DNA of 64,000 nt from Macrostomum lignano (taxonomy: Eukaryota), in contig NIVC01001141.1 of assembly GCA_002269645.1 (NCBI GenBank), positions 1 to 64,000 on the forward strand. The letters run 5' to 3'. The notes beneath the pieces are model-generated. The model saw nothing but the letters and a program-made list of their open reading frames with translations, was not told the origin of the DNA and searched no databases. This document shows, piece by piece, positions 2,453 to 54,796 of the stretch. The position numbers and the translations under genes were made by a program. The first letter of the stretch is position 1. Every line of letters begins with the position of its first letter.

Positions 2453-5400
2453 ATGGCTCACGCCAAGGTTGCGCCACAATCGCTGACTGATGATGAGGCG
2501 GAGATTCTGAGAAGTACGCGACCCGAGGATCAGGATCGAGTAAGGATTTCAGCTGATTGTAAATTTCCCACACGGATCTCTCTGGCTCCTTTCATTTAGG
2601 TTGGCGCACTTTGAGCTGTTGGGCACGAATAAAAAACTTGTTTCCATAGCAACCCTGTGCTTTAGAGGCAAAGGAAAGAGCTTTTTCTGCTGTTTTGGTA
2701 AGCCGGAGGGACTTCGTGTTAACCACCTTTTAACACACCGAGAAGTAGAAATACAAAAGACAAAAGCAAACCTGACAACAAAAGGCAGCAAAAGTAGGAA
2801 GTGGCTGGGAAATCCTGGCGAGGCGGATCAAAGCGGCTCTTTTCCACATCATTATTGCCGTTTGCCTCGGATTTCAACTGGGCTCTGATGTGAGATGCTG
2901 GAGCCAACCAATAAAAGTACATTTTTAATGCCTGCGTGCCCTTGAGCCATGAGCCTAGCATGCTGCAGCAGCTGCAGGATTCCGTGAGAAAGCCCCAGGT
3001 AGAGAGGCCACTAGAGCAGCGGGAAAGCAACTGCTGCAAGAAGAGATAAAAATGAGTTCTCTGTGGCAGCGGTACCCAACTTAAGCGAAGAGATGCTGAG
3101 TAGTACTGGCACAAGAGTGGAGAAGACATGCGATTGCCTGTCATGAGTACAGTCCCAGAAATAATGCTCTCTTCTTTCTGGCATTCAGACCATTCACCCA
3201 AGCAACCCCGACCTCTCGACAGCCTGTGAAAACAAAATTTCTGCCCTCATTCTCTGCATTTCTGCAGTGGGGTGTTCCCGGTTTGGGGTAAATCGCGTGA
3301 ATGTGACATTCCCAAAGTCCACAAGCTTATTTGAACCCAAGGAGCTGTATCTTTACTCAAGTCTATGCCGTGTCAAATCGATATCCAGCCGAGTTTACGG
3401 GAGGTACTGGAGAAATCAAGTCAATAAAATGAAATTATAAAACGTCGAAATGCAAATATTCAGTAGATGAGGAAACAGCACATTATGTTCTGTCAGAGTT
3501 AGTGAGTAAACTTGACAGGCTGAAATATAAAATAGACTGTTAGCACCTCTACGAACGTGCTCCCCCATGCTTGCAGAGACACGAGATCTTCTCCAGCAGG
3601 CTAGCCGGCAGCCCGCACCAGAACGTGCTGGACCTCTTCCTGACCGGGGAGCGAGTGTCCTGCACCCAGCCTTGCTTGGGACGGCGAGACGGCGAGCGCT
3701 CGCCCTACACCTGGCTGTCCTATAGAGAGGTAGGCGCTTAGAAGGGGCCTGATTGGAACATTAGCTTGATTGATATTTGGATTCCAATCGATTTAAGCGA
3801 ATGGACTTTTGCCAGCCATCAAGAAAATTGATACGCTGTTTCCCGCTAATGAGGGGCTTGTCGGATTTGCAGTCAGCGAGGCGGAAAGCTGTAGTGCTGC
3901 TTCAAGCACTGACAGTAGATCAGATTTATACAATAGTTGAATCTTGAGGATAGATATAGCTAAAACTATAGACAAAGTCTAGCTGGAACTGTGAGCACAG
4001 TGAGTTTTGTGGCCTCTAGCAAAGGAAGTTTTGTCAGTCCCCAGCAACTGGACTTGTTCAGAAACCTATGCGGGTTTTGAGGTAAGAGAGGCCAACACAG
4101 CCGTTTACCCACCGGTTACAGGTGCTGCAGCAGGCCCGCTGCGTGAGCCACTTCCTCACCGGGCAGCTGCATCTTCGACGCGGCGCTTTCGTGGCAATCT
4201 GGTCGAAGAACCGGACCGAGTGGGTGACGCTGGAGCTCGGCTGCTTCATGACGGGCCTCGTGCCGGTGCCACTGTATGACACGCTCGGCGACGAGGCCTG
4301 CGACTACGTGCTGAAGCAGACTGGCGCGGCCGTCATGCTGTGCGAGGGCCGGGCTCAAGCAGCCGGACTGACTCGGCTCAAGTCGGGCGCTCAGATCCAG
4401 CACCTGATTCAGCTGGACTTCGCCGAGGTGGCCAACAGTGAAGTCGCGGAAGGCCCCAAGGTCTGGAGCTGGTCGGACGTGCTGAGCACCGGCGAGAGCT
4501 GGAAGAGCGGCTGGCACAGGCTGGAAAGCAGCAGGAGCAGCCGTGGGCAGGGCCGACCTGGCTGTTCTCTGCTACACCAGCGGAACTACAGGTGGGCGGA
4601 AAAAGCGATCAAAGTATGATTAACTGACCGTACTTAATTGCAAAGGAAGCTGTCTATTGGCTTTTCTGCTGCTCCCAGAGGATAGTTTCAAATTCAAGTC
4701 CACGAATACTGCGGTTATTCCTTGCATTCTGTTCTCTGCAGCCATTGCAAGACTTCATTCATAAGCCCTTGAGGCATCTCGCGCATGCACATCATCACCT
4801 AACAATGTAACATCAGTGTCTTCAGTAGATAGTGCAGCGCAAGAATATCAGAGGGCAAAAAAATCATTTTTTGAGTCATTCCTTATTCCCCTCGCAGCGA
4901 GGATTGAAATTAACTTCAGACGAACTTAATTATCATACTAACATCACCCCTCAGGCCCACGAAGGGAGTGCAAATCACACACGGAAATCTGGTGGCAGAG
5001 GTTCTCGGGATGCACGAGTTCTTGGTGGCTCATGGAGGCCAGGTGAGCATGAGCATGAGTGCTATGAGTGCTAGTACGAGTACGAGTTATCAGTATCAGT
5101 ATCTGTATCCCGGAGCAATTGCAGTATCAGTGGGTAGAGAAAGAATTTCCGTCCCCAGACCAACCTGCTTGCAGCTTAGCTTGTTGCGGGAGGGAATCCG
5201 ATGCCCATTCGCTAATTGTACCAAGCTTAAAATCTGATCTTAATTCCATTATCTACTGGAATTCAAAGCGGTCCAGCGTAAATTGCCTGAGACTTCAAAG
5301 CAAAATAGCGCAAAAACTGCCTTTGCCAGCACGCACCTGTGCCTCACCACGACGACGTGTACCTGAGCTACCTGCCGCTGGCGCACATCTTCGAGCGCAT

Positions 5401-7004
5401 TATGCAGCTGTTCTGCTTCATGCAGGGCATGCGGATCGGCTTCTTCCGCGGCGACATCGCTGGCCTCACAGCCGACATGCGGGAGCTGCAGCCCACCGTC
5501 TTCTGCACCGTGCCGCGACTGCTCAACCGAATCTACGACCTGGCGCACGCCAACGTGGCCGGCAGCTGCCTGAAGTCGCTCATCTTCAACCTGGCGCTGC
5601 GCAAGAAGACAGAGGAGGTTGACCGCGGCGTTATCCGCAACAACTCGATGTGGGACTCGCTGGTCTTTTCCAAGGTGCGCGAGCCCACCGGGGGCCGCAT
5701 CCGCCTCGTCATTGTGGGTTCCGCGCCGCTCGCCGAGTCCGTCATGCGGTTCGCACGAGCTGCCTTCGGCTGCCCCGTCATGGAGGGCTACGGCCAGTCT
5801 GAGGCCACCGGCGGCTCCACCTGCACTCCGCCGACCTGCGTCTCGACCGGCCACGTGGGCGTGCCTCTGTTTCAGAATGCCGTCATGCTGCAGGTATCCG
5901 GGTTCTGGGTGGGGCTGCTGGTAGTGGACTGGAGGCATGCACATTTATTTTTCCCAACAGTTTACTTCGGCGATTGTGTATTCAGTCGCTCAACACTCTA
6001 CATGTACAAGATTCATCGTTTTTTCATCGTTTAGCGCACCCCTTCCTGCCGCGCAGGACGTCCCTGAGATGGACTATTTCTCTCGGGACGGCCGTGGTGA
6101 GGTCTGCGTCCGGGGGCCAAACGTTACCAGCGGTTACTTCGCCCAGCCGGACAAGACGGCTGAGGCCATCGACAGCGCTGGCTGGCTGCACACGGGCGAC
6201 ATCGGCGAGTGGCTGCCCGGCGGGCTGCTGAGAATTATCGACCGCAAGAAGCACCTTTTCAAACTGGCGCAAGGCGAGTACCTGGCGCCCGAGAAGATCG
6301 AGCAGGTGTACGCTACCTGTCCTACCATCCAGCAGGTGTACGTTGACGGTGACAGTCTGGAGAGCTGCGCGCTGGCAGTGGTAGTGCCCAGTGCCGAAGC
6401 GGCACAGGCCTGGGCGCATCGCCATCGCGAGGACTCGGCGGGCTCGCCTGAAGTTGCTATGACAGCCGCCTGCGGCAGCGAGGAATTCAAGCAGGCAGTG
6501 ATGCAGGAGATGCTGGCGGCGGGGAAGGCGGCTGGTCTAAAGTCGTTCGAACAGGTGTGAAACTGTTGCCACTTTTTCGTCTTTTTCAATTAAAGCCTTC
6601 AAAATACCACTGTTATCACAGAAATCTGCGGCTGTTAGAGCCTCTGCAATTTTAGCCACTTGATTAGGCCTCTCGATAGCGGACCCGCTCTGAACCCTAA
6701 TCCAGGCAGGATCGGCTTGTTGTGAATTATGATAGGCTTTGCAGTGAATTAATTTTGAACCAAGGTGCTATCATGTGAATGCTTATCAGCTGCCTTGACT
6801 ATCAAGCTGCCAAGTTCTTCTAAAAACATTGAAACCTTAAAATCCGCTCCAAAACAGGCGAAAGACATTGTTCTGCACCCGGAAGCCTTCAGCATAGAAA
6901 ACGGCTTGTTGACGCCCACCTTCAAAGCCCGGCGGCCTGAGCTGAGGAAGCGCTTTGGCGATGAATTCAAGCAGATGTACCAGAAGATGAAAACTGGAGG
7001 CTGA
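2453..7004 (+). CDS. ACSL: Long-chain fatty-acid-CoA ligase (ACSL1/5/6 family), 7 coding exons
   Basis: Exons 2453-2539, 3577-3729, 4122-4591, 4955-5042, 5330-5893, 6057-6554 and 6858-7004, all GT-AG. Motifs: WLSYRE, VPLYDTLG, CYTSGTT (in a shifted frame, see findings), KGVQITHGN, YLSYLPLAHIFER, EGYGQSE, WLHTGDIG, IDRKKHLFKLAQGEYLAPEKIE, FSIENGLLTPTFK. A TACTAAC branch point lies at 4936-4942. The first exon is less certain than the rest. Confidence 0.92.
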
Positions 7005-8046: not shown

Positions 8047-8385
8047 ATCGGCGAGCTCTTAGACGCTAACTACAGTCCAAGTGTCGTGTGGGAATTCGAT
8101 GAGGATTACAGAAAGTTGATCGCAGACTCGGATTCGCATCGATGGGGCTGCGAGCCTCCACAGCTGTACCACCGACACCTTAACGCACCAAGAAACTTAA
8201 AAGTCACCCTGAGCAGACCAACATCCAACCAGTCGCAAGCTCCCATCTGCCTAAGCTACAACTCCCCTGCTGGCTGCCAGCGGTCCTCCTGTAGGTACCG
8301 TCACGTCTGCAAGCTGCGCGACTGCGGCCGGCCGGCGTCGGCGGCGACGCTGTGGAGGGAGCAAAAAACTAGATCTTTTTTATAG
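8047..8385 (+). pseudogene. C-terminal remnant of the Ngaro-type gag ORF with a Cys/His zinc finger
   Basis: ICLSYNSPAGCQRSSCRYRHVCKLRDC matches the C-x2-(Y/F)N-x4-C-x4-C-x-(Y/F)-x-H-x-C finger of YR-retrotransposon gag. The 5' part of the ORF is missing and it abuts A1 directly. Confidence 0.65.
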
Positions 8386-8407
8386 CCGCCCTGCTTTTAA
8401 CCCCCGT

Positions 8408-9941
8408 TTGCCGTCGCCTTTTATCTTGCCTCCCTCTGCTCATTGCCCTGCTCCCACCCTGCTCTCTCCACCGCGCCGCGCTCTGTCGTCCAACATGAAC
8501 CTTGCCGCCTGGGAGCCGCTGCTTCTGGGTGACCAAGACGAAAATTTTTTTCGCAGCGGCCTTAGTTACGGCTTTCGGCTCGTCAATAGGTCGCCGCCTT
8601 CTCTTGCCTGCTCCGCCAACTACCGCTCAGCCTTGGACCAAGCCAAGCAGGTTGATGAACTGCTCGCCGAGGAGCTCCGTCTCGGCCGCCTGCAGCTCGC
8701 CAATGGCCCTGTCATGATGAACGCCATCGGGGCGATTCCAAAATCTGACGGCAGTGTCCGGGTCATTCATGACCTTTTTAGACCTTCGGGGTCCTCCGTC
8801 AACGACAGCTATGAGCAGGAAAAGGGGCTGCGCTTCGCCTCTGTCCAAGACTTGAACCGCTATCTTCGCCCAAGCTCGTTTATCGGCAAAATCGACCTCA
8901 AGCAGGCCTATCGTTCCGTCGGTATTCACCCAGACGACCAGGTGCTCACGGGCCTCAGCTGGCGGTTTGCTGCCGACAGCGATGACTCGGTGCTCGTTGA
9001 CACCCGGTTGCCCTTTGGTGCTCGAGCGTCATGTGAAATTTTCCATCGCTTATTGGCCGGCATCAAGCGCCACATGCTCAGCATTGGCTTCACAGCTACC
9101 GTCAACTACTTGGACGACTGGGCAGTAGCCACTGATACTGAAGAAGCGGCTCAGGAGGCCTTCAATTATCTGGTTGAGCTACTGCAGAACTTAGGCTTCG
9201 ACATCAACCGGCAGAAGACCGTGGCTCCAGCTCAACACGTTGTGTTTCTCGGCGTGCTGGTTGACATTGTGAACGACACTCTGTCACTTCCAAGCAACAA
9301 GAAAGACGACATTAGGAAACTGCTGAACGATTGCCTGTCACGTGACGTTGTTAAGCTGAAGCAGCTCGAAAAACTGGCCCGAAAGCTGTGCTGGCTCAGC
9401 CAGATCAACAGGCTGTTGCGTCCTTTCCTGCGTCCGCTCTTCGACATCCTCAGCTACAGAATGGACACCCGGCTGCCATCTGAGCTTCGCAACCTCTTCC
9501 TCTGGTGGCTGCGCGTCGTGAGTTCTCTGCCGCCGACGGTCATTCGCCCCCGTCTTCGTCAACTTGTGGCCATCGAATCTGACAGCAGTTGCGAGGGTGC
9601 TGCTGGCATCATCTTTGGCAGCGAATTCAGTGACTGGACGTACTTCAGCTGAGAGAAGGACTTCGAGAGCAAGTTCCGCGACCTTCACATCAACCACAAA
9701 GAGGCGCTGGCTCCGCTGCTTACCATCCTGCGCTTCCGCGAGCAGCTTAGGAACAGCCGCGTTGTGATTTACTCGGATAGCACTGCTCAATAATGGCATG
9801 GTCAATAAGCTGTCCTGTCGGCATCATCTGCTCATTCGCATCTATCAGACCGTTGCTCTCGTGTGCCTCACGTCGGGAATTCAGCTCCAGGCGTTCCACC
9901 TTCCTGGCCAGATGCAGCTGCTGAGCGACTCCGCTTCTAGA
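8408..9941 (+). pseudogene. Reverse transcriptase-RNase H of the YR retrotransposon
   Basis: RT motifs IPKSDGSVRVIHDL, KIDLKQAYRSV, RLPFG, NYLDD, VFLGV. RNase H motifs ESDSS, HINHKEALA, YSDS, HLPG..LSDSASR. A TGA at 9650-9652 probably replaces a Trp codon, and there is a frameshift near 9790. Confidence 0.9.
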
Positions 9942-10017
9942 ATGGGGGGCTCGAGCAGAGAGCTCATTAATTTTTGCTGCCGTCTTTACGGCTCTTTATG
10001 CATTTGCCCTTTCGAAT

Positions 10018-11034
10018 TTGCTTCCCACACCATTTCTGCCGTGTCTCGCACCCTCTTTATTCACAGGTCGCAGCCGCGCTCCGTTCCGTTCCACCGTGTC
10101 TGTGTCCGCTCTGTGCCGCCTGTCACTAGCGCCTAGTTCCAGGAAGTCCTATGCGAGCCACTTACAAGTCTGGAACGAATTCTGCCGGCAGCGTCGAATT
10201 CCTGCGACCGTCGCCTCTGAGTCTGATGTCTGCCAATTTGTCTCGTTCCTGTTACAACGTGGACCGGCGTCCTACTCCAGTGTGCAGTCAAGCCTCAGCG
10301 CGGTGTCTTTCCTTCATAGGGCTTCCGCGTCGCCAGACCCGACCAAGGGCAGCGCTCGCCTGGCTCTCGTGTGTCGCGGGGCTCGGCGTCTTCTGAGCCG
10401 GCAGTCTCGGCGTGCGACGCCGCTGAAGCCCAGCCACCTCCGCCTGCTCTGCAGCTCCACCGAGCTACGTCATTCGCTGCCAGCATTGCAGGTGGCCTGG
10501 TGGGGAGTCCTTAGGCTCGGCGAGCTCTTACCATCCACCGCTGCGGACGCTCTTCCCTGGAGCTGCCTATCAGCGTGCCCCGGTGGTCTGCGGCTGGTGC
10601 TCAACAGGTCAAAGACAAACCAATTCAAGGAGCGGCAACTGGAAGTTTTTCTGCCGCAGGCCTCTGAATGTCTGCTTATCTGTCCCGCTTCCGCACTAGC
10701 AACTCATCTGCGCGAGAATCAAATCTACGCGTCGCAGCAGCCCCTGTTTTCTGTCCTAGGCAGCCGCGGCCGGACTCTCTTGTCTGCCGCTATGTTCATC
10801 CGGCTCCTAAAGCGGGGCATGTCTCTGTGCGGCTTTGGTGAGTGCGGCTTCTCAGGTCACAGTCTGCGTAGAGGGGGGGCCAGCGCTGCCTTTCAGTCAG
10901 GCCTCTCAATCGCCGACATCCGTTGCATAGGCGACTGGCGTTCAGACTGCGTCTTTCGGTATTTCTCTGATGAGGCGTCATTTGCCCGCCGTCGGACAGC
11001 AGCTAGGCGGATCGCTGCCTGCCTGGCCTCTTGA
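10018..11034 (+). CDS. Tyrosine recombinase of the YR retrotransposon (intact ORF)
   Basis: Catalytic set present: LRLGEL (R), SKTNQF (K), GHSLRRGGA (H-x2-R), GDWRS (W), FRY (Y). Confidence 0.93.
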   Translation: MLPTPFLPCLAPSLFTGRSRAPFRSTVSVSALCRLSLAPSSRKSYASHLQVWNEFCRQRRIPATVASESDVCQFVSFLLQRGPASYSSVQSSLSAVSFLHRASASPDPTKGSARLALVCRGARRLLSRQSRRATPLKPSHLRLLCSSTELRHSLPALQVAWWGVLRLGELLPSTAADALPWSCLSACPGGLRLVLNRSKTNQFKERQLEVFLPQASECLLICPASALATHLRENQIYASQQPLFSVLGSRGRTLLSAAMFIRLLKRGMSLCGFGECGFSGHSLRRGGASAAFQSGLSIADIRCIGDWRSDCVFRYFSDEASFARRRTAARRIAACLAS

Positions 11035-12988: not shown

Positions 12989-13727
<739 letters not shown>

Positions 13728-13898: not shown

Positions 13899-16800
13899 TT
13901 AGGCAAGGAAGGCGTGCTCCAGGAGGTCGGTGGTATCCATCCTCGCCTCGGGTTCCTTTACAACGCAGCAGCGGTAGAAGTTGCGCAGCTCATTGGACAC
14001 TTTTGCTGAAATGTCGGGCATCTCGTACTTGTGGAAGTAGCGCGGGATCTGCATTGGCAGCAGGTGGCTGTTCGGCGGCTTGCCTTCTGCCATCTCAAAA
14101 ACGGTGCAGCCGAAGGCCCACACATCGGACTGGGGCGTGTACTGGGCGTTGCCCTCCGCGCTGTGCAGCTCTGGCGCCATGAAGTAGGGAGTGCCGCACT
14201 GGTTCATGCTGATGTAAGCAATTTTCGATGTGGTGATTTCTTTAGCTAGGCCGAAGTCGATCAGCTTGACAATGCCCTCATGAGTGAGCATTACATTGGA
14301 ACACTTAATGTCCCGGTGCAGGATGGCCGGCCTCCGTCTGTGCAGGAAGTTGAGGGCCGCGCAAATCTGTGAAGGGAACCAATATTTGCTGATTTGATGT
14401 GTTTTCATAAAAATAATTTTGTTATTTCATGCTACTAATATTGCTACTCAGGTGCAGCATTACCTGCTGAGAAAACTTCTTTATTCCGGACTCCTCAAAC
14501 GGCTTCCTCTGCCGTTTCATCAAATCAAAGAGGCTGATTCCGGCGATGAGTTCAGTGAAGATGCAGAACTGACCACTGTCATCGAGCTCGGATTTTAGGA
14601 ACACAACGATATTCGGATGTCGGACGGTCTTCAAAATTTCTATACCTTTCCTTTCCTGCTCGATTGCTCTTTTGTACCTCTTGGGATCGTTGCCCTTCAT
14701 TGTGACAATCTTTACAGCCACGAACTGGTGCTTATCTGTGTAGGCCTTGTAAACCTTGCCAAAGCCACCCTCTCCGATGGGCCTCTTCTTGTTGTCATCG
14801 TCACAGATGATGTCCCACTTTGTGAAGTTGGGGTCGAGATAATGTGCGGCGGGTTCGGACGCAGCCCTAGCGCCAGCCCCAGCCCCAGCCCCAGCTGCAG
14901 CTTTGGGCCTCTCGGCATTTCGCAGAAACCTGTGCTTCAGAAGCTCAGTTGAGGTAAACCTCTGCTCGGGATTCTTCGCCACACAGTGACGGTAAAATTC
15001 GCGCATGTCAGAAGAATATTTTTTTGATGGCAGAGGCATTTCCTGCATTTCCTTGAGCACATTGGGAATCTGCTGTTCCCGCTTGTCTCTGTTTGGAGGC
15101 TCGCCTTCTGCCATTTCGAAGATAGTGCACCCAAACGCCCAGATGTCCGTCTTGGGTGTGTAGGAAACATGCGCCTGACTGCTGAACAGTTCAGGAGCAA
15201 GGTAATACCAGGTGCCGCACTGGCTCTCAGTCACTGCTGCGATTGTTGAAGTGACGATCTCTTTAGCGAGTCCGAAATCAATCAACTTGATTACATCCCG
15301 CTTTGTCAACATAATGTTGGAGCATTTGATGTCCCTGTGCAGAATTGCAGGCTTGCGTGTATGCAGAAAATCCAGCGTTGAACAAATCTGAAGAAGCATG
15401 TCAAGCGTGATTAATCAGTTCTGTGATTTATTCAACATCAACATCACCATCAAAAATATAAATCTACATATTTACCTGGGAAGCATAGCTTCTGATTTCC
15501 GACTCTTCAAAAGACTGCCGATCCTTCAAGTGGTCAGCCAGACTCATGCCGTCAATCAACTCAGTGAAGACGTATACGGCTCCATCCTTCTGTTCGGACT
15601 TTAAAAAGATGGCTATATTTTGGTGACGAATGGCCTTCAAAACTTCAACGGCTTTCATCTCCAAGTCGATGGCTTTCTGAACGACTCTATCGTTCTTGGC
15701 ACCCTTGAGCTTGGTTACTTTCACTGCAATTGTTTGGCCCTTGTTTGTGCGCGCCTCGTAGACCCTGCCGAAGTTCCCTTCGCCGATCAACTTTTTCTTA
15801 CGTCTCTCATCATAGATGTAGTCCCAGTCTGTAAATGTGGCGTCCAGATGATCCTCTGTGGACCTAGAAATGCGATTGTTGGATATCATTGAATACATAA
15901 CACCGGTGAACATAATTTTAAAGGCATAAAAAAGCAAAAAATTACTCCTGTCTCTGATTGGCGCCGCCAGGTCTTCTACTTGGACTTGGCTTTTCGCGGG
16001 AACCAGATTTCTGCAGAACCTTCAGGAGCTCTTCGTGATTGCGCTTCTTTGCGATATCCACAGCGTTCTCCCCTTTCTGGTTCGGCTTGCCCACACTGCA
16101 GCCGCGGCTCATGAGAAATCGCACTGTCTCGGGGCTCGCGTCCGCCTTCACAGCCCGCATCAATGGCGTGTTGCCATCGGTGTCCGGAGTATCCAGAGGA
16201 GCACCCACTTTAGCTAGGAACTCAAGAAGCTCTATGTTGTCCTCTTTTGCTGCGTACCAAGCCAGAGTCTTGCCGTTGTCATCCTTCACGGAGATGTTGC
16301 ACCCTTTTCCGTGTAGGTATTGAACCATATCAACGGAGCTCTTCTGTGCCGCGCATAAAATGGCGGTCTCATTTATTTTGTTCGGCAAATCCAGTTTAGC
16401 TCCAGACTCTCCCAAAGCCATCAGGATCACAAAATGTCCGTTGTAGGCAGCCCTCAAAGCAGGAGACACACCGCGCTTGTTCTGATGATTCAGATCGCTT
16501 CCTTCGGAGATCAGAAAGCCGACCGATTCTTCAGGACCCACCTGGCAGGCACCAAGGAGTGCGGTTTCACCATTCTTCTTGTTGACCTGCTTCATTGACA
16601 AGCCCATTGCGCGTAGCTCTTTAAGCATGTCGACCTGCTGGTTTGAAGCCGCAATCATGGCGAAGTCATAGCCGTTGAACTCGATGTGATCAATCCGAGC
16701 TCCTGCATCAATGAGCATGTGGAAGATGGGCAAAGAGCCCTGCTTGATTGCGCACTCTAGTGGCGTTGTTCCCTCCTCGTCTGCCTGGTTGACATTCGCG

Positions 16801-17699
16801 TTACTGCGAATTAACAGCCGCACAATGTCGTCGTGCCCGTTGTTCACTGCCGAAAAAATCGGAGTTCGACCAGTGATGCTCGTGTGGTTTATGTTGCAGC
16901 GCTTCTCCAGTAAGAAATTTACGACTTCAAAGTGATCGTTTTGAGCAGCGCAAAACAGTGGCGTGTGTCCACGATCGTCCGTGAGCTCAAAGTCAGCCTT
17001 GTACTTGTTCAGCAGAAGCATAATGTCCAGGTGCCCATTTAGAGCGGCAATAAACGCCATTGTGCGGCTCTGGGCGAGCTTATGGTTGCAGGCTTTGCGG
17101 TCCGGGTGATTCTTCAACCAGAAGTCGATAATTCTTACGTTACCTTCCTGCGCAGCGGTCATGAGGGTCTTCTCGTGCACCACCGAGTCGAATTGCAGGC
17201 AGCGCCTGACGTTCTCCAGTGTTGTGACGATAACAAGACTCCTCTTCATCAGACCGATATCCGCTGCTGTGTGGCCCTTGTTGTTGATGTGAGCCACATT
17301 GGCCCCCTTCTCAATAAGAAGTTCGACCGGCTCCTGCTTTTTGTTGATGACGGCGGATATGAGTGGCGTATCACCATCTTCGTCTGTGGCATCGATTTCC
17401 GCTCCTCGTCTTAGCAGCTCCCTGATCACATCCGTGTGTCCTTCATGTGCTGCAAGGTGCAGTGCGGTAAGACTCTTTTTGCCTCGAGCGCTTGGGTCGC
17501 CGCCGCCATCCATGAAGGACAGGCACCGCCGACGATCACCGGAGGCAGCCGCCTTCAGAAAGGATTTAACTGCTGGTGGAGTCGGATCTTCGCTGCTGCT
17601 GGTGGAACTGGCATCTTTCCGCTTTTTTTGAACTCCCTCCATGAGCTCCTCCAGATGCTCCCGGAGCATTCGTTCGAAATCCTGTAGTGGTGGGGGTCT
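13899..17699 (-). CDS. Ankyrin-repeat protein (about 15 repeats) with two tandem STE/MAP3K-like Ser/Thr kinase domains
   Basis: Exons 17699-15946, 15863-15476, 15387-14464 and 14366-13899 join in frame through GT-AG introns (3534 nt including the stop). Ankyrin consensus G.TPL..A...G...IV..LL..GA is repeated. Kinase 1: [30 protein letters not shown]. Kinase 2: [48 protein letters not shown]. Confidence 0.92.
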
Positions 17700-19343
17700 C
17701 TGAAAGAGAAGGGGCAGCTGTCGTACATGAAAATATTTACACGTAGCTTTTTATGCAGTCTTACATATGATTTATACAAAATTTTTAACCAAATGATTTG
17801 GTACCTTGTTAAAAAATCAAGGTTTCAACTAGATTACTTACACTTGACATGCTTCGGCAAGCAGTGTGTCAAATTTAAATACCCACAGAGTAAGCTGATC
17901 TCCTACGAGCTTATAATTAATTGTGGATAAGAATTTTTACAGTTAAACGAACGTAATGCTTTTTTTGCCAATCAGTTGAATGCGACACACTATAAATCCA
18001 AGCTTTGTACAGAGACAGCATCCCCCGCCCTCAGTCAGAGAGGACAGAAAAAATACTCATGCCCAGTACAGTATGCGATATGCCTGTGTACGTACACCTC
18101 CGAATGTACTGGCATGGCGCTACGCTCGTATTTGCGCTTTCTGCGTCGCAGTAAAAAAGTTTGCTTTGATGCGAATAGGCAAGCAAAATAAGGTACTTTA
18201 AATTGATAACCCGCGGGGTACGTACGTCTGCTGTACTGCGCGCAGTCAGTAGCGACTGCATTACATCTCTGCACTACCAGCATTACCATACCAGCTTGGA
18301 TATTTTACACTTCTATTTGTTTTATACAGAGACGAAAATATAATTTCCTTTCCATCCAAGATAAGAAAGCAAAAGCAAAGCTGATTCTAATATTTTTACT
18401 TTGATATTCATGTAGTACCTTGTAGCCGCGAGAGCAACGTGCAAGCAGACCCGGACACGCCCTGTCTTGCAAATCCGTGCTGCTTTTTAGACGATACGGA
18501 TGCAAAAAATTTTTTATTAACTACAGACTGAACAGATTGAGGGAATTTTTTTGTTTTTTTGCTTTACCTGACTGTAAATATTTTACCCCATGCACAACCC
18601 TAAAGAAACTTTTCCCAGAGACATTACTTAGTTAATCTTACGATCTTAAATGAGGTATTAAAAATACACAACATGCAACAACACCTATCCAGTGCAGCAT
18701 CTAATTAAGTAGCGGGGAGGCGTGACGCTTTGAGACAGCGATATGGCGGTGAAGCTGCATGTGACTTGATCTGTTGGCCCGATAGGTATTCGGTGGTCTG
18801 TGAGCTATAGCTGTTTCTGTTAGCGGCAGGCTTTCGGATACGGGTTCGGAAGGTTTGAACTAATTCCGAAGACCAAAAGCAGCAAAAACCTCCAAAACCA
18901 ACAAAAGGTAACAGCTCGAAATGCACTATTATATATATTACATCGCCACGAGTAAAATCTGCTTGCGGGTTGCGGCCGTCAGCTAATATTATCGACAGGA
19001 AATAGAAGCCCCCAATGTTTAACATAAAACAGAGCAAGACGGTCTTTGACCACGAGACACGCTCGCTGTCACCGCAAACTGCTTCGGGAAGTACATGTAC
19101 ACGTACTCGTAAATTTACGATCATGGAAATAGAAGTTCTATACAGTGTACATACATGTACATGTTTAAATGATTTGTCCAGTGTTCACGTACAGCTCACT
19201 TCACAACAAATGTCTTTTAATTTAATCCAGTTGTTTTTATTCCGTTGCTAATCCTGATGCGTCCCTATTGCATTTAATGTGTCGCATTATCTCCTCTCCT
19301 GCATCTTAGAATTTTTGAGAATTTCTAAATTTATGAGACTTAC

Positions 19344-30762: not shown

Positions 30763-30801
30763 AAGAAATTGACGCCAATGAAGTAATACGCGAGCGAAAT
30801 C

Positions 30802-33800
30802 ATGGTGCGAGCGGGCCAGTTCAGTGTGCTACGCTATGGCCGAAGATTATTTCAGCAGTACTTAGTGGACATGTGTGCCAAGATTGAGGCAGAGAGGCTG
30901 CTGTATTTGCGGACCGATCAGCAGGACCTGCGCAGCGAGACGTATAGCGGTCTGCGGGACGCTCTGTTTGCAGCTGATGGCAGGTCTACCGACAGAGATC
31001 CGAGTGACATAGGCAAGCCCGCACATGTGCTTCTGTCCTCAAGCTTCGTTGGTAGGCCAAGGTACCTGATGGAGAGGCTGCAGGACGCTATGACCTATGT
31101 TCACAAGTTTGGTCAGCCGGACCTGTTTGTCACGGCAACATGCAATCCGAATTGGCCTGAGATCAGCGCCCAGCTGCTGCCTGGACAGCGGGCTGAACAC
31201 CGGCCGGACATTGTTAGCCGAGTCTTTTAAATGAAGAAAAAAGCTCTGCTGGCCCAGCTAACGAAGCGCTATGGGAAAGAGGCCGCGCACGTCTGCTCGC
31301 TAGAGTACCAAAAGCGTGGTGAGTGCAAGTCTCAGTATTAAATTTTATGAAATTTAAATCGTTATAATGATACTAAATATAGGTGGGTTTGTATGATGCA
31401 AATTCGATACAGATCGGATAATTGGACTGAAAGATGTCTTGATACTTTTTTTGATAATCCAGGTCTCCCCCATGTGCACTTTCTGCTGTGGCTCGCGAGC
31501 GGCCAGCGGGTGACTCCGGACCGATACGATGACATCGTGTCTGCCGAGATTCCGGACCCACAGCAGCAGCCTGTGCTGTATGAGCTGGTGAAAACGCACA
31601 TGATCCATGGTCCTTGTGGCAAGGACAATCCAGCGTGCCCGTGCATGGAGAATGGCGAATGCAGCAAGGGCTTTCCGAAGGAGTTCCAGCAGGTGACGCT
31701 GATCAGCGATACTGGCTACCCACTGTACCGCAGACTGTCGCCTGAGATAGGTGGATTTACAGTGGACAAACTGTTCAAAGGCCGCAGCATTCGCATGGAC
31801 AATAGGCGAGTCATGAGTATTAGATGCCTCTTGTATTTTATGTTGGAAACGTTTGACAATGTTTTTATCCTTAAACCACAGGTGGGTTGTGCCTTATAGC
31901 CCTGAACTGTTGCTCCAGTTTGCGTGCCACATGAACGTTGAAGTTTGTGCCACTGTAAAGTCGGTCAAGTACGTGATCAAGTACTTGCTGAAGGGCGGCG
32001 ACATGGCAACGTTCAAAGTCAATGCCAATCAGAATTCTGCTGAAGCGACAGAGCAGAGTGCGGGTAGTCAGCAGCCGGCTCAAACGGTAGCGGCAAACGA
32101 TGGAGAGAGGCCGCGTGATGAAATCAAGGAGTATCTGTCTGCGCGCTACATTGGCCCAATGGAAGCTGTGAATACAATTTTGGGCTTTGAAGTAATAAAT
32201 ATTTTAAATTTTAAATATTGCAAAGCTATGGCTTTTTGTATTCGGAAAAACTTAAAAGTGATTATTTCTCTCCCACCTTCTGATCAGGTGCACGACAGAT
32301 TTCCGGCGGTCATCCGGCTCTGCGTTCACAAGTCGGAGGAGCAGCTCGTGTATTTCAACGAGCAGACCGCAAGTGCTAGAGCCAGGACGCCGAGGGACTC
32401 TACGTTGACGGCATTTTTCAAGCTGTGCCGTACTGACGAGTTCGCTCGGTCCTTGCTCTACACGGAGGTGCCGTCCTACTTCGTGTGGCATGCCAGTGAA
32501 AGAGTGTGGCGGCGGGCGAAGCGAGGCGCGAAGCCGATGGCCACCCGGGTGTAGTGCGGAACACAAACGTTGCACGCATGTACACGGTGAGCCCAAGAAC
32601 TGGTGATTTATTTTATGTTCGCATGCTCCTTTTGCGAGTCAAGGGACCAACCAGCTTCGAGGCGCTGCAGACCGTGGACGGCGTTGTGCATCCCAGCGCC
32701 AAGGCTGCTTGCATGGCACTTGGCCTGTTGCAGCGAGATGACCACTGACGACGGTGCCTAGCTGAGGCCGTTCAGTCAAGAATGCCAAGAGCCCTGAGAC
32801 ACCTTCTGGCTGTCATTCTCGTATGGGGCGAGCCTGAGGATGGCAACGACCTCTGGTGCTCTTTTGCCGAAGATATGTGCGAGGACCTGCGGTTCCACCA
32901 TCGAGATCTAAGTGCCGAGGAGATTACTGACCTAGCGCTCCGCGAGCTGCAGAGCATGCTGACCTCCATGGGTGGGAGAAGCCTGCCAGAGTACGGCTTG
33001 CCTGCGGCCTCCGTGATGCCTCAAGATGGACCGATGCAGTTCGATACGATTGAGCAAGCGCAGATTACTGAGGCACGCTTACCAATGCTAACAGACGAGC
33101 AGAAAGCCGCGTACGAGTCAGTGACTCAGGATCTTGTGAGCGGCAACGGCGGCTTGCACTTCCTGGACGCGCCCGCTGGCACTGGCAAAACCTTCCTGCT
33201 GGAGGTTTTGCTGGCCTTCGTGCCCAGCCGGGGTGAAGTCGCTCTCGCCGTTGCGGCTTCTGGAATCGCAGCGACTCTGTTGCCAGGTGGACAAACTGCG
33301 CATTCCACGTGAGTTGTTTATATTTAATTTGTAAATTATTGGTAACTTACGGATAATTAAACAAGTAAATATGTGAATACTTCCTCTGCTGTATGATACC
33401 CAAATTTTTCCATGTCAGGTTCAAGATACCAATTCGGGTATTACGCTCAAACAAGGACGTGTGCGCTGTTGGAGTGCAGTCCAAACAAGCTGATGTATTT
33501 CGCACAGCGCGTCTAATTGTGTGGGACGAGATTTCTATGACAAACCGGAAGGATTTGGAGGCTGTCGACCGGTGCTTGCGAGATGTGCGGAAGCAGGACC
33601 GGTTGTGGTGCATGGGACTCGTGCTAACAGCGTCATGGCGTGTGTGAGCCGATCCTCACTGTCGAAATACTTCCAACGGCATCGCCTGACGAGAAACATC
33701 CGGATGCTGAGCAGTTCCGATTCTGTAGCGTATCAGATGTACACTGAGCTACTCAAGCAGGTAAGTCTGATTTCATCAGTTTATTAAATGATTGACAATG

Positions 33801-34683
33801 ATACACTAGACGCGGATTTGTTTTTGAGCTCAATTTTTTAAGTTTGCGTCATTTAGGAATGCCTATGCTTAAAAGTGTGTATAGGTTATGAAATATTCGA
33901 CATTTTAACCCTCCACAGATCGGATCCGGAACAATGGAGCAGGATGTGGAGGAGAAAGTGTCTCTGCCAGCCGAGATCGTGATTTCTGCGGAAGGGCCTC
34001 TCACTGACCTGATCAATTTTGTGTACCCATCGTTTGAAGAACCAGTGGAGAGAGACAGCTACTTTGCAAACCGAGCGATCCTGGCGCCTTACAATGACTC
34101 AGTGGATACCATCAATGAGACGTGTCTGGGCATGTTCCCCGGAAGCCTGCGAGAGTACCGCTCAATAGACAGTGAGGCCGATGAGGATGCCGCTACGCAC
34201 TTCCCGCCTGAGTTGCTGAACCAGCTGGATGCCCCGAACTTTCCGATTCCCTTGTTGAGGCTGAAAGTGGGTATGCCAGTAGTGCTTCTGAGGAACATCA
34301 ACCCGCCACGGTTGTGCAATGGTACGCGGCTCATCATACTCGCGATGGGCGAGAACGTGATTCGGTGCAAGATTGCCGCTGGCCAGTTCACGGGAGATGA
34401 GATTCTTCTGCCGCGAATCCCGCTGATTCCTAGCAATGCGGACCTGCCCGTCAGTTTTAAACGATTACAGTTCCCTGTGAAGCCGAGTTTCTGCCTGACG
34501 ATCCACAAGTCACAGGGACAGTCTCTGGACACAGTTGGCGTGGACCTCGCTGTCGGTTGCTTCACTCATGGCCATCTGTATACGGCTCTGTCGCGAGCAA
34601 GGAACTCTGCTAATGTCCGTGTCCGTACTTCTGGAACTAAGACGAGGAACGTGGTGTACCCAGAGGTGCTGACTGGAGACTAA
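30802..34683 (+). pseudogene. Helitron Rep (HUH endonuclease)-PIF1 helicase, six exons, 5'-truncated and disrupted
   Basis: FQQYLVD, PDLFVTATCNPNWPEI, EYQKRG|LPHVH (HUH), HMIHGPCG, GYPLYRR, DNR|WVVPY, KYVIKYLLKGGD, Walker A DAPAGTGKT, Walker B WDEISM, HKSQGQSL, HGHLYTALSR, NVVYPEVL. Stops at 31228 and about 32746, a frameshift near 32540, and loss of the GGDFRQ helicase motif near 33600. Confidence 0.93.
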
Positions 34684-34965
34684 GCGATTTCGGACGCTAT
34701 TCGTGAGTTCAAGTCCAAGGGATGTGTTTGAGAAGTGTCTGGCGTCTGACTGTAGAGAATGAAATCAAAGTCGCGTGGAGTCTCAATGAACTGATAGCCC
34801 TGAGAGAGTACATTGAGTAAATCCTATTTACGAGGGATGTTTCATAAGTTCTTTCTTATACTCATCTATAACAGTTTTACATGAACATAATATACAGTCA
34901 TTTAACAGACAAAAACTACAGCCACTGATCATACAGTCACTATGCAGACAGTCTCTAAACAGAAA

Positions 34966-41442: not shown

Positions 41443-44400
41443 TTGAACTTAAGAACCATTGCACATGGACAACGAAAATTTGACGAGGACAGGGACAAGG
41501 GCTTAATAGGCTTTTATCGGCTCAGGCTCAGCTAGGTTAGTGCTCGTCGCACAGATAGCAACTTTATTAGTTAGCAAGCTTTATGTGAAATTTAGTCGGT
41601 ACACGAAAGAAAAGGTCTAGTAATTTTCACTACCTGATCGAAACAGTTCAACCTGCACCTTTTCGGGAGAGGCTATAAATTAAAAGAAAATTGGCGTCTT
41701 TAGAGCTCACTGTGCTCAGAATTCAATCAGATTTGAGTCATCACAGAAGGCTGCAGCAGCTGCCGCTGGGCAGGCCCTGGGCGAAGAGTTTGTTCTCGAA
41801 TCCGTACACGAAGAACACGCCCTGTCTGCCCTCGTGCTCGTAGTGGACCTCCGTGACCGGGATTCCGCGAAGGTTGTGCCTCTGTCTCAGCACCCGCTGG
41901 CCTTTCAGGCTGTTCTCGTGGGCCCCGATCAGCGACTTGGAGGCTCGGTTCACCGGCGAGATAGGAAAGTTGCTGATGGGAGTCAGCAGTTCGCCCTCCT
42001 CCTCGAAGATCACTTTGCCTGTCACGTCCCGCACCAGCTCGTCGGGTAGGTCCGTGCGCTCCTCAATGTAATCCGCGTTCTTTCCGCGCCACTCACACTT
42101 TAGCTTCACGGCGAACACGAGCTGTTGGTGACCACTGCAGGTTGTGCAGGTTTCCTCCCCGCTGCCGCTGCACAAGGGACAGCTGTGAGGGATGGTGTGT
42201 ATTAAGTGCTTTGAATTATCTAGACTTATGAAGTACGTTAGATGTGTTAGATGTGAGGCTGCAGGGTTGTCAAGTAAACACTGCACGAGTTTCCTATATA
42301 CAGCTCGCTATTGGAGCACGCATGCTGTACACTGTACATGTGTAGCAACCCACACCCATGAGGAAACCTCAAATACGACGCCCCAGAATCAGCAACTCAC
42401 CGACGCTTGCCCTGTCCATCACACTCCCCACAGTCGACTTTCCTCAGCACGGCGCCCTGGGCTACCGTCTTGCGACCATGGCCGCCGCAGTCACCGCATC
42501 GGGTCAGCTTCTTCCCTCTGCACTTGTGACACACCGTCTTGCCCTTAGCATTGCAGTGGTGGCACGGCTAAAAAGGGCAGAAAAGTAGGATCACAGTCAG
42601 CCTTTTGGTGTGGAGGGTGAAGCTGGAGTAAGTGTAAAGTCTAGTTGCATACTACGAGCGTAAAAAATTCACCGTCACAGTGCTGGTGTGTGGGACGATG
42701 AGCTCCTTGTCCTGATCCACGAACATTTCCCGCGGCCTCAGCTCAACCTCCCAGGGCCCGGGCGCCTTGCCCTCGTTAGGACTGTCCAGCTTCTGGCCAG
42801 AGAAAGGCTCGTAGCTCCAGCAGGTGAAGCGGGATTCAACATAAGTCTCCAGGCAGTACTGCAATCATGATGGGAAGCGGTGCACTTGTACGGTAGCTTT
42901 GCTGCGTTTGAAGAATGACGCCCAGACTTCCCCATCAACCTGCTTATTGTGTTCCAACAACTTAGTTGAACTTAAGAACCATTGCACATGGACAACGAAA
43001 ATTTGACGAGGACAGGGACAAGGGCTTAATAGGCTTTTATCGGCTCAGGCTCAGCTAGGTTAGTGCTCGTCGCACAGATAGCAACTTTATTAGTTAGCAA
43101 GCTTTATGTGAAATTTAGTCGGTACACGAAAGAAAAGGTCTAGTAATTTTCACTACCTGATCGAAACAGTTCAACCTGCACCTTTTCGGGAGAGGCTATA
43201 AATTAAAAGAAAATTGGCGTCTTTAGAGCTCACTGTGCTCAGAATTCAATCAGATTTGAGTCATCACAGAAGGCTGCAGCAGCTGCCGCTGGGCAGGCCC
43301 TGGGCGAAGAGTTTGTTCTCGAATCCGTACACGAAGAACACGCCCTGTCTGCCCTCGTGCTCGTAGTGGACCTCCGTGACCGGGATTCCGCGAAGGTTGT
43401 GCCTCTGTCTCAGCACCCGCTGGCCTTTCAGGCTGTTCTCGTGGGCCCCGATCAGCGACTTGGAGGCTCGGTTCACCGGCGAGATAGGAAAGTTGCTGAT
43501 GGGAGTCAGCAGTTCGCCCTCCTCCTCGAAGATCACTTTGCCTGTCACGTCCCGCACCAGCTCGTCGGGTAGGTCCGTGCGCTCCTCAATGTAATCCGCG
43601 TTCTTTCCGCGCCACTCACACTTTAGCTTCACGGCGAACACGAGCTGTTGGTGACCACTGCAGGTTGTGCAGGTTTCCTCCCCGCTGCCGCTGCACAAGG
43701 GACAGCTGTGAGGGATGGTGTGTATTAAGTGCTTTGAATTATCTAGACTTATGAAGTACGTTAGATGTGTTAGATGTGAGGCTGCAGGGTTGTCAAGTAA
43801 ACACTGCACGAGTTTCCTATATACAGCTCGCTATTGGAGCACGCATGCTGTACACTGTACATGTGTAGCAACCCACACCCATGAGGAAACCTCAAATACG
43901 ACGCCCCAGAATCAGCAACTCACCGACGCTTGCCCTGTCCATCACACTCCCCACAGTCGACTTTCCTCAGCACGGCGCCCTGGGCTACCGTCTTGCGACC
44001 ATGGCCGCCGCAGTCACCGCATCGGGTCAGCTTCTTCCCTCTGCACTTGTGACACACCGTCTTGCCCTTAGCATTGCAGTGGTGGCACGGCTAAAAAGGG
44101 CAGAAAAGTAGGATCACAGTCAGCCTTTTGGTGTGGAGGGTGAAGCTGGAGTAAGTGTAAAGTCTAGTTGCATACTACGAGCGTAAAAAATTCACCGTCA
44201 CAGTGCTGGTGTGTGGGACGATGAGCTCCTTGTCCTGATCCACGAACATTTCCCGCGGCCTCAGCTCAACCTCCCAGGGCCCGGGCGCCTTGCCCTCGTT
44301 AGGACTGTCCAGCTTCTGGCCAGAGAAAGGCTCGTAGCTCCAGCAGGTGAAGCGGGATTCAACATAAGTCTCCAGGCAGTACTGCAATCATGATGGGAAG

Positions 44401-54713: not shown

Positions 54714-54720
54714 TATAAAT
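54714..54720 (+). promoter_or_regulatory. Probable TATA box of the P450 gene
   Basis: TATAAAT(A) about 80 bp upstream of the ATG at 54797. Confidence 0.5.
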
Positions 54721-54796
54721 AGACGCAAGGAATTCTCCTAGCTCAGCTTATGCCAGTTCACTGCACTCTTTTGCCAAGGTACAACTGGAACACAAA

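Follow-up and report, generated by a model that had tools for sequence, protein, structure and literature searches.

Gene structure at the locus

The locus carries a five-exon gene on the minus strand at positions 13899-17850 of the window, the 64,000-nt stretch of Macrostomum lignano DNA analysed here, with four GT-AG introns of 142, 82, 88 and 97 nt. Joining the minus-strand exons 17669-15946, 15863-15476, 15387-14464 and 14366-13899 gives a 3504-nt open reading frame of 1167 amino acids, which aligns from end to end with GenBank PAA71750.1 (1180 aa) at 100% identity; that record is the product of BOX15_Mlig002250g2 from M. lignano. The 13 additional N-terminal residues of PAA71750.1 are accounted for by a 9-nt first coding exon at 17842-17850 (minus strand; ATG TCA AGT, encoding MSS, with the donor read in the sequence as AGT/GTAAGT, the slash marking the splice site), which is joined to the acceptor at 17700/17699. 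The product at the locus is thus identical to PAA71750.1 at 1180 aa, and A0A1I8J3B8 is a further record matching the gene model. The preliminary description had placed the locus at 13899-17699; a gene does lie there, but the right end at 17699 is an exon boundary and the coding sequence starts at 17850. Residue numbers below refer to the 1180-aa protein (P0001).

The remaining exons, all on the minus strand, follow the domain layout closely. Exon 2 (15946-17699, ending in phase 2) encodes an acidic and Ser-rich N-terminal lead and the entire ankyrin solenoid, and residues 4-588 are 100% identical to it by tblastn. Exon 3 (15476-15863) encodes the N-lobe of the first kinase domain (K1), with its GEGNFG Gly loop, Lys636 and alpha-C Glu, and ends in phase 0 after SYASQ. 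Exon 4 (14464-15387) is 924 nt or 308 codons long, runs from phase 0 to phase 0 with an uninterrupted reading frame, and encodes the C-lobe of K1 (HRD736), a linker and the N-lobe of the second kinase domain (K2; GEGGFG, Lys943). The linker, 22 Ala/Gly residues at 14854-14919, is the presumed duplication junction and includes a hexanucleotide repeat, (GGGCTG)n, at 14862-14895 (TRF). Exon 5 (13899-14366) encodes the C-lobe of K2 (HRD1044) and ends with the stop codon TAA at 13899-13901. K1 therefore occupies residues 589-873 (14920-15863, split by the intron 15388-15475) and K2 residues 896-1180 (13902-14853, split by the intron 14367-14463). About 170 bp past the stop codon, in or just beyond the 3' UTR and outside the protein, TRF identified a 738-bp (TATC)184 microsatellite (12989-13726, unstranded), which also yields artefactual 'SIYL' open reading frames.

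Ankyrin repeats and kinase domains

Pfam matches in the protein are confined to ankyrin and kinase families. Among the former, Ank_2 scores 331 bits over nine stretches and Ank scores 207 bits, with additional matches to Ank_4, Ank_3 and Ank_5. Pfam and a 33-residue ruler together lay out 15-16 repeats at residues ~58-575 (15984-17537, minus strand): 13 are clear by the ruler, and three were recognized by eye, namely the N-cap, residues 142-174, and residues 509-542 with a one-residue insertion.

Each kinase domain matches Pkinase (PF00069) over profile positions 3-263 of 263, with 208.4 bits for K1 and 195.6 bits for K2 against a gathering cut-off of 31.7. A chance pattern is ruled out as an explanation of the domains, with E-values of 1e-57 to 1e-101. 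K1 and K2 are 54-55% identical, and each keeps the GxGxFG loop, the beta-3 Lys (within IAVK in K1 and VAVK in K2), the alpha-C Glu, the HRD Asp, the catalytic-loop Asn, the DFG Asp and APE, as well as the subdomain-IX Asp and subdomain-XI Arg. The catalytic positions are Lys636 and Asp736 in K1 and Lys943 and Asp1044 in K2, and the catalytic residues are invariant across K1, K2 and two paralogues. The HRDIKCSN catalytic loop is common to both domains, and their activation segments are nearly identical in architecture. Judged from these retained residues, K1 and K2 both look catalytically competent. The AlphaFold2 model of K1 is a confidently predicted canonical kinase fold (mean pLDDT 89.4, pTM 0.88), with values below 50 only in the activation loop (domain residues 176-185). 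The preliminary description had counted about 15 ankyrin repeats and two complete, apparently active kinase domains with their motifs kept, and had contrasted GTWYYLAPE in K1 with GTPYFMAPE in K2; all of these readings agree with our results.

Genomic copies and selection

Three intact genomic copies encoding 1180 aa lie on separate contigs; within the window, tblastn matches this locus alone and no second copy was found. Copies g2 and g4 have diverged by 2.4% in introns and 0.7% in exons, with 19 synonymous and 6 non-synonymous differences (pN/pS 0.09, binomial p = 1.6e-8). By domain, the ratios come from small counts and are 0.07 for K1 (8 synonymous, 2 non-synonymous; p = 1.2e-4), 0.07 for K2 (4 and 1; p = 8e-3) and 0.10 for the ankyrin region (6 and 2). 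As far as these substitutions can tell, the comparison shows purifying selection on the ankyrin region and on both kinase domains.

One gene and one polypeptide

K1 and K2 are in one polypeptide, because exon 4 spans from the C-lobe of K1 to the N-lobe of K2 and is physical proof of their continuity. A fusion of two neighbouring genes is ruled out, since the junction lies within one exon and K2 has no Met ahead of its catalytic Lys. An assembly artefact is also ruled out, given that the two domains are no more than 55% identical as proteins and that three separate contigs have the same structure. The GenBank model derives from an RNA-seq-based transcriptome annotation that ran from StringTie/TACO through TBONE to TransDecoder, with TBONE making its cuts at sites of trans-splicing and polyadenylation, and this pipeline dropped only alternative transcripts sharing an identical CDS (PMC5730564). 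The single gene proposed at the outset is supported on all three counts: the bridging exon, the lack of an upstream Met in K2 and the RNA-seq-based model. An independent assembled transcript fragment across the K1-K2 junction was not found with a 221-aa junction query, which returned only single-kinase paralogues but is weak as a negative, as the same protein collection did not return the full protein itself either. The support for a single transcript therefore consists of the published annotation pipeline and exon continuity.

It is very unlikely that the gene mainly makes something other than the tandem protein, whether because the model is mis-fused or because exon 4 is mostly left out during splicing. 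Structurally, skipping would be easy: exon 4 is symmetrical and both flanking introns lie at the homologous SQ/IC position, so its removal keeps the frame and rebuilds a whole kinase. The result would be an in-frame 872-aa protein with the ankyrin region and a hybrid kinase (K1 N-lobe plus K2 C-lobe), which matches the single-kinase paralogues in size (863-880 aa), and the missing junction-spanning fragment would fit this scenario. However, the K1 C-lobe and the K2 N-lobe, which such skipping would remove, show purifying selection, exon 4 is present in all deposited models of the three full copies, and the records contain no isoform of 872 aa, even though the pipeline removed only same-CDS alternatives. 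Mis-fusion of two genes is excluded by the position of the junction inside one exon.

Kinase group

K1 and K2 are assigned to the STE group by sequence. In HMMER searches of solved structures, STE20-family kinases lead for K1, K2 and the family profile, scoring 7-27 bits over ASK1. The best PDB matches of K2 are STK25/STK24 at 137 bits, and the family profile reaches 177-182 bits against SLK, STK24 and LOK and 162 bits against ASK1. Among the PDB matches, ASK1, which is also of the STE group, and NEK kinases interleave about 15-20 bits under the leading STE20 kinases, and the P+1 loop of K2 is STE-like. In a Foldseek search with the K1 model, ASK1/MAP3K5 came first, and the best 50 matches consist of ASK1, LOK, TNIK, MST2, MST4, HPK1 and MAP4K4 plus one WNK1 entry, with alignments at 26-30% identity to solved STE-group kinases. 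The nearest named proteins outside are plant MEKK-type MAPKKKs and MAP3K19 (32-38% identity). Taken together, the best sequence and fold matches are the STE20 family (SLK, LOK/STK10, STK24/25/MST4), ASK1, MEKK-type MAPKKKs and MAP3K19. The STE assignment made earlier is thus upheld, with STE20 kinases leading the HMMER matches and ASK1 the Foldseek matches of K1, whereas the narrower label of MAP3K-like is only partly so: it agrees with ASK1 as first Foldseek match of K1 and with the nearest named proteins, but HMMER places STE20 first.

The nearest outside relatives of the kinase domains are in the STE group at no more than ~39% identity, and orthology to a defined STE20 subfamily is not evident among them. 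In Pfam, the protein lacks the STE20 accessory domains CRIB/PBD, CNH and SARAH; compared with STE kinases, its accessory domains are ankyrin repeats only. Neither an N-terminal ankyrin solenoid nor a second kinase domain is known from any canonical animal STE kinase.

The Macrostomum ankyrin-kinase family

Proteins with ankyrin repeats and one kinase domain form an expansion confined to Macrostomum, of which Mlig002250 is a derived member. The Mlig gene groups in the family number at least 20, most of them with this simpler architecture, and are 45-59% identical. For example, Mlig024438 (PAA49418.1, 880 aa) has an ankyrin solenoid 58% identical to that of Mlig002250 and a kinase 59% identical to K2; the corresponding values for Mlig023526 (PAA77795.1, 863 aa) are 45% and 48%. 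One copy of Mlig024438 lies on the same contig about 150 kb away, at ~168 kb and beyond the 64-kb window. These paralogues have one kinase domain, and among the relatives found a second complete, active-looking domain occurs only in the Mlig002250 group. Tandem derivatives arose more than once in the family: besides the kinase-kinase tandem of Mlig002250, Mlig009993 (P0369/P0231) is a second, independent tandem, a kinase-pseudokinase pair whose second kinase is clearly degenerate (HRN, GFG, SPE), and A0A1I8G4U5 is a three-unit model in the same family. Outside Macrostomum the searches gave no orthologue, and the architecture maps to no conserved orthogroup, in line with the lineage-specific origin first suggested.

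Family comparison also changed the meaning of the P+1 loop. The altered loop of K1 had been taken as a sign that the two domains have diverged in function; the position after GT, however, varies across the family (P/L/T/V/W/M), and the GTW variant recurs in six other single-kinase paralogues, so the loop was dropped as a marker of K1 divergence.

A full-text search of published papers found no mention of Mlig002250, two expression studies of M. lignano list neither it nor three paralogues in their supplementary data, and nothing relevant was found in the kinome and ankyrin literature. The Macrostomum-only ankyrin-kinase family thus appears undescribed in the searchable literature. Such a family may represent a lineage-specific signalling or defence system.

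Origin of the second kinase domain

How did the second kinase domain arise? A phase-0 intron at SQ/IC is found in both kinase units and in the single-kinase paralogue. Mlig024438g2 has three coding exons, with a phase-2 intron before the N-lobe and a phase-0 intron at SRQ/IC, the same positions and phases as in Mlig002250, and in a Logan transcript of a related species the break falls at the SQ/IC-type junction as well. The common intron in both units and the paralogue points to an internal segmental duplication, and the exon structure thus shows or strongly implies that the second kinase domain arose by tandem intragenic duplication. The duplicated segment would have taken in both kinase exons, starting at the 5' end of the one for the N-lobe and stopping at the 3' end of the one for the C-lobe; placed in tandem, it would have fused the first C-lobe, the linker and the second N-lobe into one exon and left the phase-0 intron in both units. 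This exon signature indicates that a single intragenic duplication can make a two-kinase protein.

By sequence divergence the duplication is old, because K1 and K2 are only 54% identical and about as far apart from each other as from the Mlig024438 kinase. In a neighbour-joining tree, K1, K2 and Mlig024438 fall in one weakly resolved clade (bootstrap 51%/45%). Since their branching order is weakly resolved, an alternative history, such as capture of K1 from a neighbouring paralogue, could also apply. The branch of K1 is longer than that of K2 (0.259 vs 0.202), and at 88 conserved columns K1 departs from the family consensus 11 times and K2 twice, none of these departures being catalytic. On these measures, K1 is the more derived and faster-evolving domain, with K2 keeping the ancestral sequence character.

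Proposed mode of action

STE20/ASK-type kinases normally become active when they dimerise and trans-autophosphorylate their activation loops. By analogy, the tandem could be a covalent pseudo-dimer in which K1 and K2, both active, would activate each other intramolecularly. The ankyrin solenoid would dock partners or substrates, and the activated domains would phosphorylate ankyrin-held targets with slightly diverged specificities. We consider it probable that Mlig002250 is an old intragenic duplicate within a Macrostomum-only ankyrin-kinase family and that its tandem acts as such a pseudo-dimer, which together make the best joint explanation.

A rather unlikely alternative is that one domain serves chiefly for regulation or as a decoy, much like JAK JH2 or the pseudokinase in tandem-kinase proteins of plants. 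K1, which evolves faster, would be the likeliest candidate and would leave the catalytic output to K2. The consensus departures and the longer branch of K1 are in keeping with this idea, and Mlig009993 demonstrates that kinase-pseudokinase pairs do arise in this family. Nevertheless, K1 keeps every catalytic residue despite ~46% sequence divergence, all of its 11 substitutions lie off the catalytic motifs, its canonical kinase fold is confidently predicted, and its pN/pS between genomic copies is 0.07.

An in-cis two-step cascade, as suggested in the preliminary description, seems improbable. In such a cascade, one domain would be the dedicated upstream activator of the other in RSK-like fashion, and the two would have different substrate classes. 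Five residues before the P+1 Gly-Thr, both domains have Ser/Thr; three residues before it, Ser in K1 and Ser/Thr in paralogues are replaced by Asn in K2, and this difference means that activation modes could differ. But K1 and K2 are two copies of a single kinase type, rather than successive tiers, with the same HRDIKCSN loop and near-identical activation segments, and the GTW loop of K1 is shared with single-kinase paralogues. In-cis cascades known so far combine different kinase families.

If both domains are active and cross-activating, as the pseudo-dimer would predict, Mlig002250 would represent a naturally occurring, covalently linked kinase dimer and a compact model of STE20/ASK-type proximity activation. 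It would then also illustrate in an animal the tandem arrangement of same-family kinases, which has so far been functionally studied mainly in cereals. At present it is a gene model already deposited, from a genome that is polyploid and rich in duplications, and its importance is modest.

Comparison with known systems

Two kinase-fold domains per chain also occur in RSK/MSK, JAK, GCN2 and obscurin/SPEG/UNC-89. These animal proteins belong to old, conserved orthogroups in which different kinase families are combined or one partner is a pseudokinase, whereas the pair in Mlig002250 is young (within Macrostomorpha), of the same family, and active-looking in both domains. In RSK/MSK, for example, an N-terminal AGC kinase is followed by a C-terminal CAMK kinase; K1 and K2 are instead 55% identical duplicates of one STE-like type. 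Among ankyrin kinases, ILK and TNNI3K have the ankyrin repeats before the kinase as in Mlig002250, and RIPK4/ANKK1 and DAPK1 have the reverse order; all of them have a single kinase domain, of TKL or CAMK type, and fewer repeats. With few exceptions, the best 60 PDB matches of K1, K2 and the family profile are kinases of the STE group or NEK kinases, and ILK, TNNI3K, RIPK4 and DAPK1 are absent from them.

Plant tandem-kinase proteins (TKPs) such as Yr15/WTK1 and Pm57 (PMC6170490, PMC8761531) resemble Mlig002250 in having two kinase domains per polypeptide through duplication or fusion and in forming lineage-specific, expanded families, and plant tandem models (P0168, P0172) are among the matches of the family search. 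Their kinase domains are reported to come from receptor-like-kinase lineages, and their immune function has been demonstrated. That the Macrostomum family is an animal counterpart of these surveillance proteins, with an ankyrin recognition surface and a paired-kinase switch that activates itself without an upstream kinase, is unlikely. Plant TKPs are usually a kinase plus a pseudokinase without ankyrin repeats, whereas Mlig002250 is of the STE group, keeps the catalytic residues in both domains and has an ankyrin region. Mlig002250 is an analogue of plant TKPs and not a member, and its second kinase domain is a modest novelty within a large Macrostomum-only ankyrin-kinase family rather than a new kind of system.

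Gene structure and identity

The tandem-kinase gene lies on the minus strand of the window, which covers the opening 64 kb of contig NIVC01001141.1 (Macrostomum lignano assembly Mlig_3_7, GCA_002269645.1). Four large open segments (17669-15946, 15863-15476, 15387-14464 and 14366-13899) emerge from the listed ORFs and from inspection of the sequence itself; splicing across canonical GT-AG introns of 82, 88 and 97 nt joins them into a frame of 3504 nt that encodes 1167 aa. A database search showed this model to be 100% identical over its full length to GenBank PAA71750.1 (1180 aa; BOX15_Mlig002250g2; UniProt A0A1I8J3B8), a previously deposited hypothetical protein. The deposited entry has 13 additional residues because a 9-nt first coding exon, ATGTCAAGT (17850-17842, minus strand), is joined to the acceptor at 17700/17699. 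The preliminary description had placed the gene at 13899-17699; position 13899 is indeed the stop codon, but 17699 is an exon boundary and the coding sequence starts at 17850.

Both kinase domains, K1 and K2, belong to one polypeptide. Exon 4 (15387-14464, 924 nt) runs unbroken through the K1 C-lobe, a 22-residue linker and the K2 N-lobe, and K2 has no methionine upstream of its catalytic Lys, which rules out two separate genes. Mlig_3_7 was not annotated ab initio in GenBank: its gene models go back to a genome-guided RNA-seq transcriptome built with StringTie and TACO, whose transcriptional units were split wherever trans-splice or poly(A) sites had been mapped by experiment (TBONE) before TransDecoder ORF prediction (PMC5730564). 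Intact 1180-aa proteins are encoded by three genomic copies, each on its own contig (g1, g2 in the window, and g4), and a fourth genomic model is 5'-truncated. Among fragments assembled from public sequencing reads, no independent transcript fragment spanning the K1-K2 junction was found; the single-gene reading stands on annotation provenance and exon continuity rather than on new read-level evidence. In a rival reading that we consider highly improbable, skipping of the symmetrical 924-nt exon 4 would yield an in-frame 872-aa isoform with a single hybrid kinase.

Genomic neighbourhood

About 170 bp downstream of the stop codon lies a perfect (TATC)184 microsatellite of 738 bp (12989-13726), which gives rise to long plus-strand 'SIYLSIYL' ORFs that are artefacts. 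The adjoining gene is a multi-exon AMP-binding enzyme resembling acyl-CoA synthetases (~3900-7000, plus strand; annotated product 668 aa). Between the two lie long plus-strand ORFs at 8255-9649 and 9925-11031; one has a reverse-transcriptase domain (RVT_1, 53 bits), the other matches a phage-integrase SAM-like domain weakly and below threshold, and the pair points to a retroelement of DIRS-like or tyrosine-recombinase type. Further along (~30800-34700, plus strand) is a series of ORFs, probably the remains of a Helitron-type transposon; one of them carries Pif1 2B and UvrD-C helicase domains. At 54719-56305 (plus strand) a single uninterrupted open frame, 529 codons long and without a stop, codes for a full cytochrome P450 (319 bits). 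Two 188-codon ORFs about 1.5 kb apart (41744-42307 and 43267-43830, minus strand) are identical over their first 60 residues, which include a Cys-rich CPLCSGSGEETCTTCSGH motif; neither has a Pfam match, and the pair looks like a local tandem duplication.

Domain architecture and kinase class

Pfam places ankyrin families over the first 575 residues (Ank_2, 331 bits in nine stretches), followed by two complete Pkinase domains (208 and 196 bits, each covering profile positions 3-263 of 263). A 33-residue ruler recovers 13 clear ankyrin repeats, and a further three can be made out by eye (the N-cap, residues 142-174, and residues 509-542, where one residue is inserted), giving a total of 15-16. 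K1 and K2 share 55% identity across 282 residues. In their alignment with two paralogues all catalytic positions are invariant, namely the Gly-loop glycines, beta-3 Lys, alpha-C Glu, HRD, catalytic-loop Lys and Asn, DFG, APE, subdomain-IX Asp and subdomain-XI Arg. For K1, the more divergent of the two, AlphaFold2 gives a model with a mean pLDDT of 89.4 and a pTM of 0.88, and with pLDDT below 50 only in the activation loop. The architecture first proposed, ankyrin repeats and two complete motif-bearing kinases, is confirmed.

Assignment of both domains to the STE group is solid. In HMMER searches against PDB chains, STE20-family kinases rank first: K2 scores 137 bits with STK24/25, 135 with SLK and 110 with ASK1; K1 scores 128 with STK24 and 121 with ASK1; and the family profile scores 177-182 with SLK, STK24 and LOK, 164 with NEK7 and 162 with ASK1. 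Foldseek with the K1 model, on the other hand, places ASK1/MAP3K5 on top, followed by LOK, TNIK, MST2, HPK1 and MST4. The earlier label 'MAP3K-like' is half right, since placement stays two-way between STE20 and STE11/MAP3K.

Ankyrin-kinase family in Macrostomum

Kinase-region searches bring together at least 20 distinct M. lignano gene groups, which fall into about 38 clusters at 90% identity. Their kinases are 45-59% identical to K1/K2, and most of the groups combine N-terminal ankyrin repeats with a single kinase. The closest paralogues are Mlig024438 (880 aa) and Mlig023526 (863 aa). Mlig024438g1 (557-aa model; L005) lies on the same contig at 165403-173438 of NIVC01001141.1, about 150 kb away on the opposite strand, which suggests linked duplicates. 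Two intron-less contigs of 3.1-3.2 kb (L001/L002; Logan SRR28338164/SRR28338163) encode an 877-aa ankyrin and single-kinase protein; given their 78-82% nucleotide identity to Mlig024438, they presumably represent transcripts from a different Macrostomum species. That sample gave no orthologue of the tandem-kinase gene. Outside Macrostomum the best matches reach 32-38% identity (plant MEKK-type MAPKKKs and MAP3K19). Because a full HMMER scan of 1.84 billion representatives gave no orthologue with ankyrin repeats and two kinases, the architecture does not map to a known conserved orthogroup; it is lineage-specific.

Origin by intragenic duplication

The coding sequence of Mlig024438g2 is split into three exons; a phase-2 junction falls immediately ahead of the N-lobe and a phase-0 junction between SRQ and IC, the point at which a related-species transcript contig also breaks. 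The tandem-kinase gene has a phase-2 junction ahead of K1 and a phase-0 junction between SQ and IC in both K1 and K2, the pattern expected of one intragenic tandem duplication, whose breakpoints would fall close to the N-lobe exon's 5' end and the C-lobe exon's 3' end. The linker contains a (CAGCCC)5.7 hexanucleotide repeat (14862-14895; GGGCTG on the coding strand) encoding a AGAGAGAG stretch; this (GGGCTG)n repeat may mark the duplication junction and may differ in length from copy to copy. A neighbour-joining tree puts K1, K2 and Mlig024438 together in a single clade of weak resolution (bootstrap 51% and 45%), with the longer branch leading to K1. At conserved columns K1 departs from the family consensus in 11 of 88 and K2 in 2 of 88, none of them catalytic. 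The kinase duplication is an old one, with K1 as the derived copy. That K1 serves as a regulatory or decoy module, diverged in sequence with its catalytic residues intact, we consider rather improbable.

Comparison of g2 with g4 gives 25 exonic differences in 3543 nt and 10 intronic differences in 409 nt. Over the whole CDS, 19 are synonymous and 6 non-synonymous (pN/pS 0.09, binomial p 1.6e-8). The corresponding counts are 6 and 2 for the ankyrin region (0.10, p 2.6e-3), 8 and 2 for K1 (0.07, p 1.2e-4) and 4 and 1 for K2 (0.07, p 8e-3). All three regions behave as constrained coding sequence, with small counts per domain.

Activation and comparison with other tandem kinases

The altered P+1 loop of K1 pointed out in the preliminary description is real, but 'GTW' also occurs in six single-kinase paralogues and so does not single out K1; the family residue after the conserved Gly-Thr is variable (P, L, T, V, W or M). 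Three residues before Gly-Thr, K2 has Asn where K1 and the paralogues carry Ser or Thr, a weak hint that the activation requirements of K1 and K2 may differ; five residues before, both have a hydroxyl residue. Dimerisation and trans-autophosphorylation are an established mode of STE20/ASK-type kinases. By analogy, we favour a mechanism in which the tandem would form a covalent pseudo-dimer whose halves activate each other, seated on an ankyrin docking scaffold. The two-step cascade in cis originally proposed would need two different kinase classes; K1 and K2 are duplicates of one class, and we regard this model as very unlikely.

Predicted proteins with several kinases are no rarity in databases: examples include oomycete, Mastigamoeba and bacterial metagenome proteins, plant tandem kinases and a PAK3-like array from a bird. 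Many of them are probably fused arrays. A more distant M. lignano subfamily also holds tandems of its own. Mlig009993 (P0369/P0231; contig of 280,862 bp) combines a short ankyrin region and an active-looking kinase with a degenerate second kinase (HRN, GFG, SPE), and three near-identical kinase units occur in A0A1I8G4U5 (P0224); tandem kinases therefore arose repeatedly in the M. lignano expansion. The gene described here is a variant on the ankyrin-kinase and tandem-kinase themes; the intragenic duplication behind it can be identified, and its two kinases are both intact and under constraint. Its best-studied analogues are the plant tandem-kinase immune proteins, although their kinase lineage differs.
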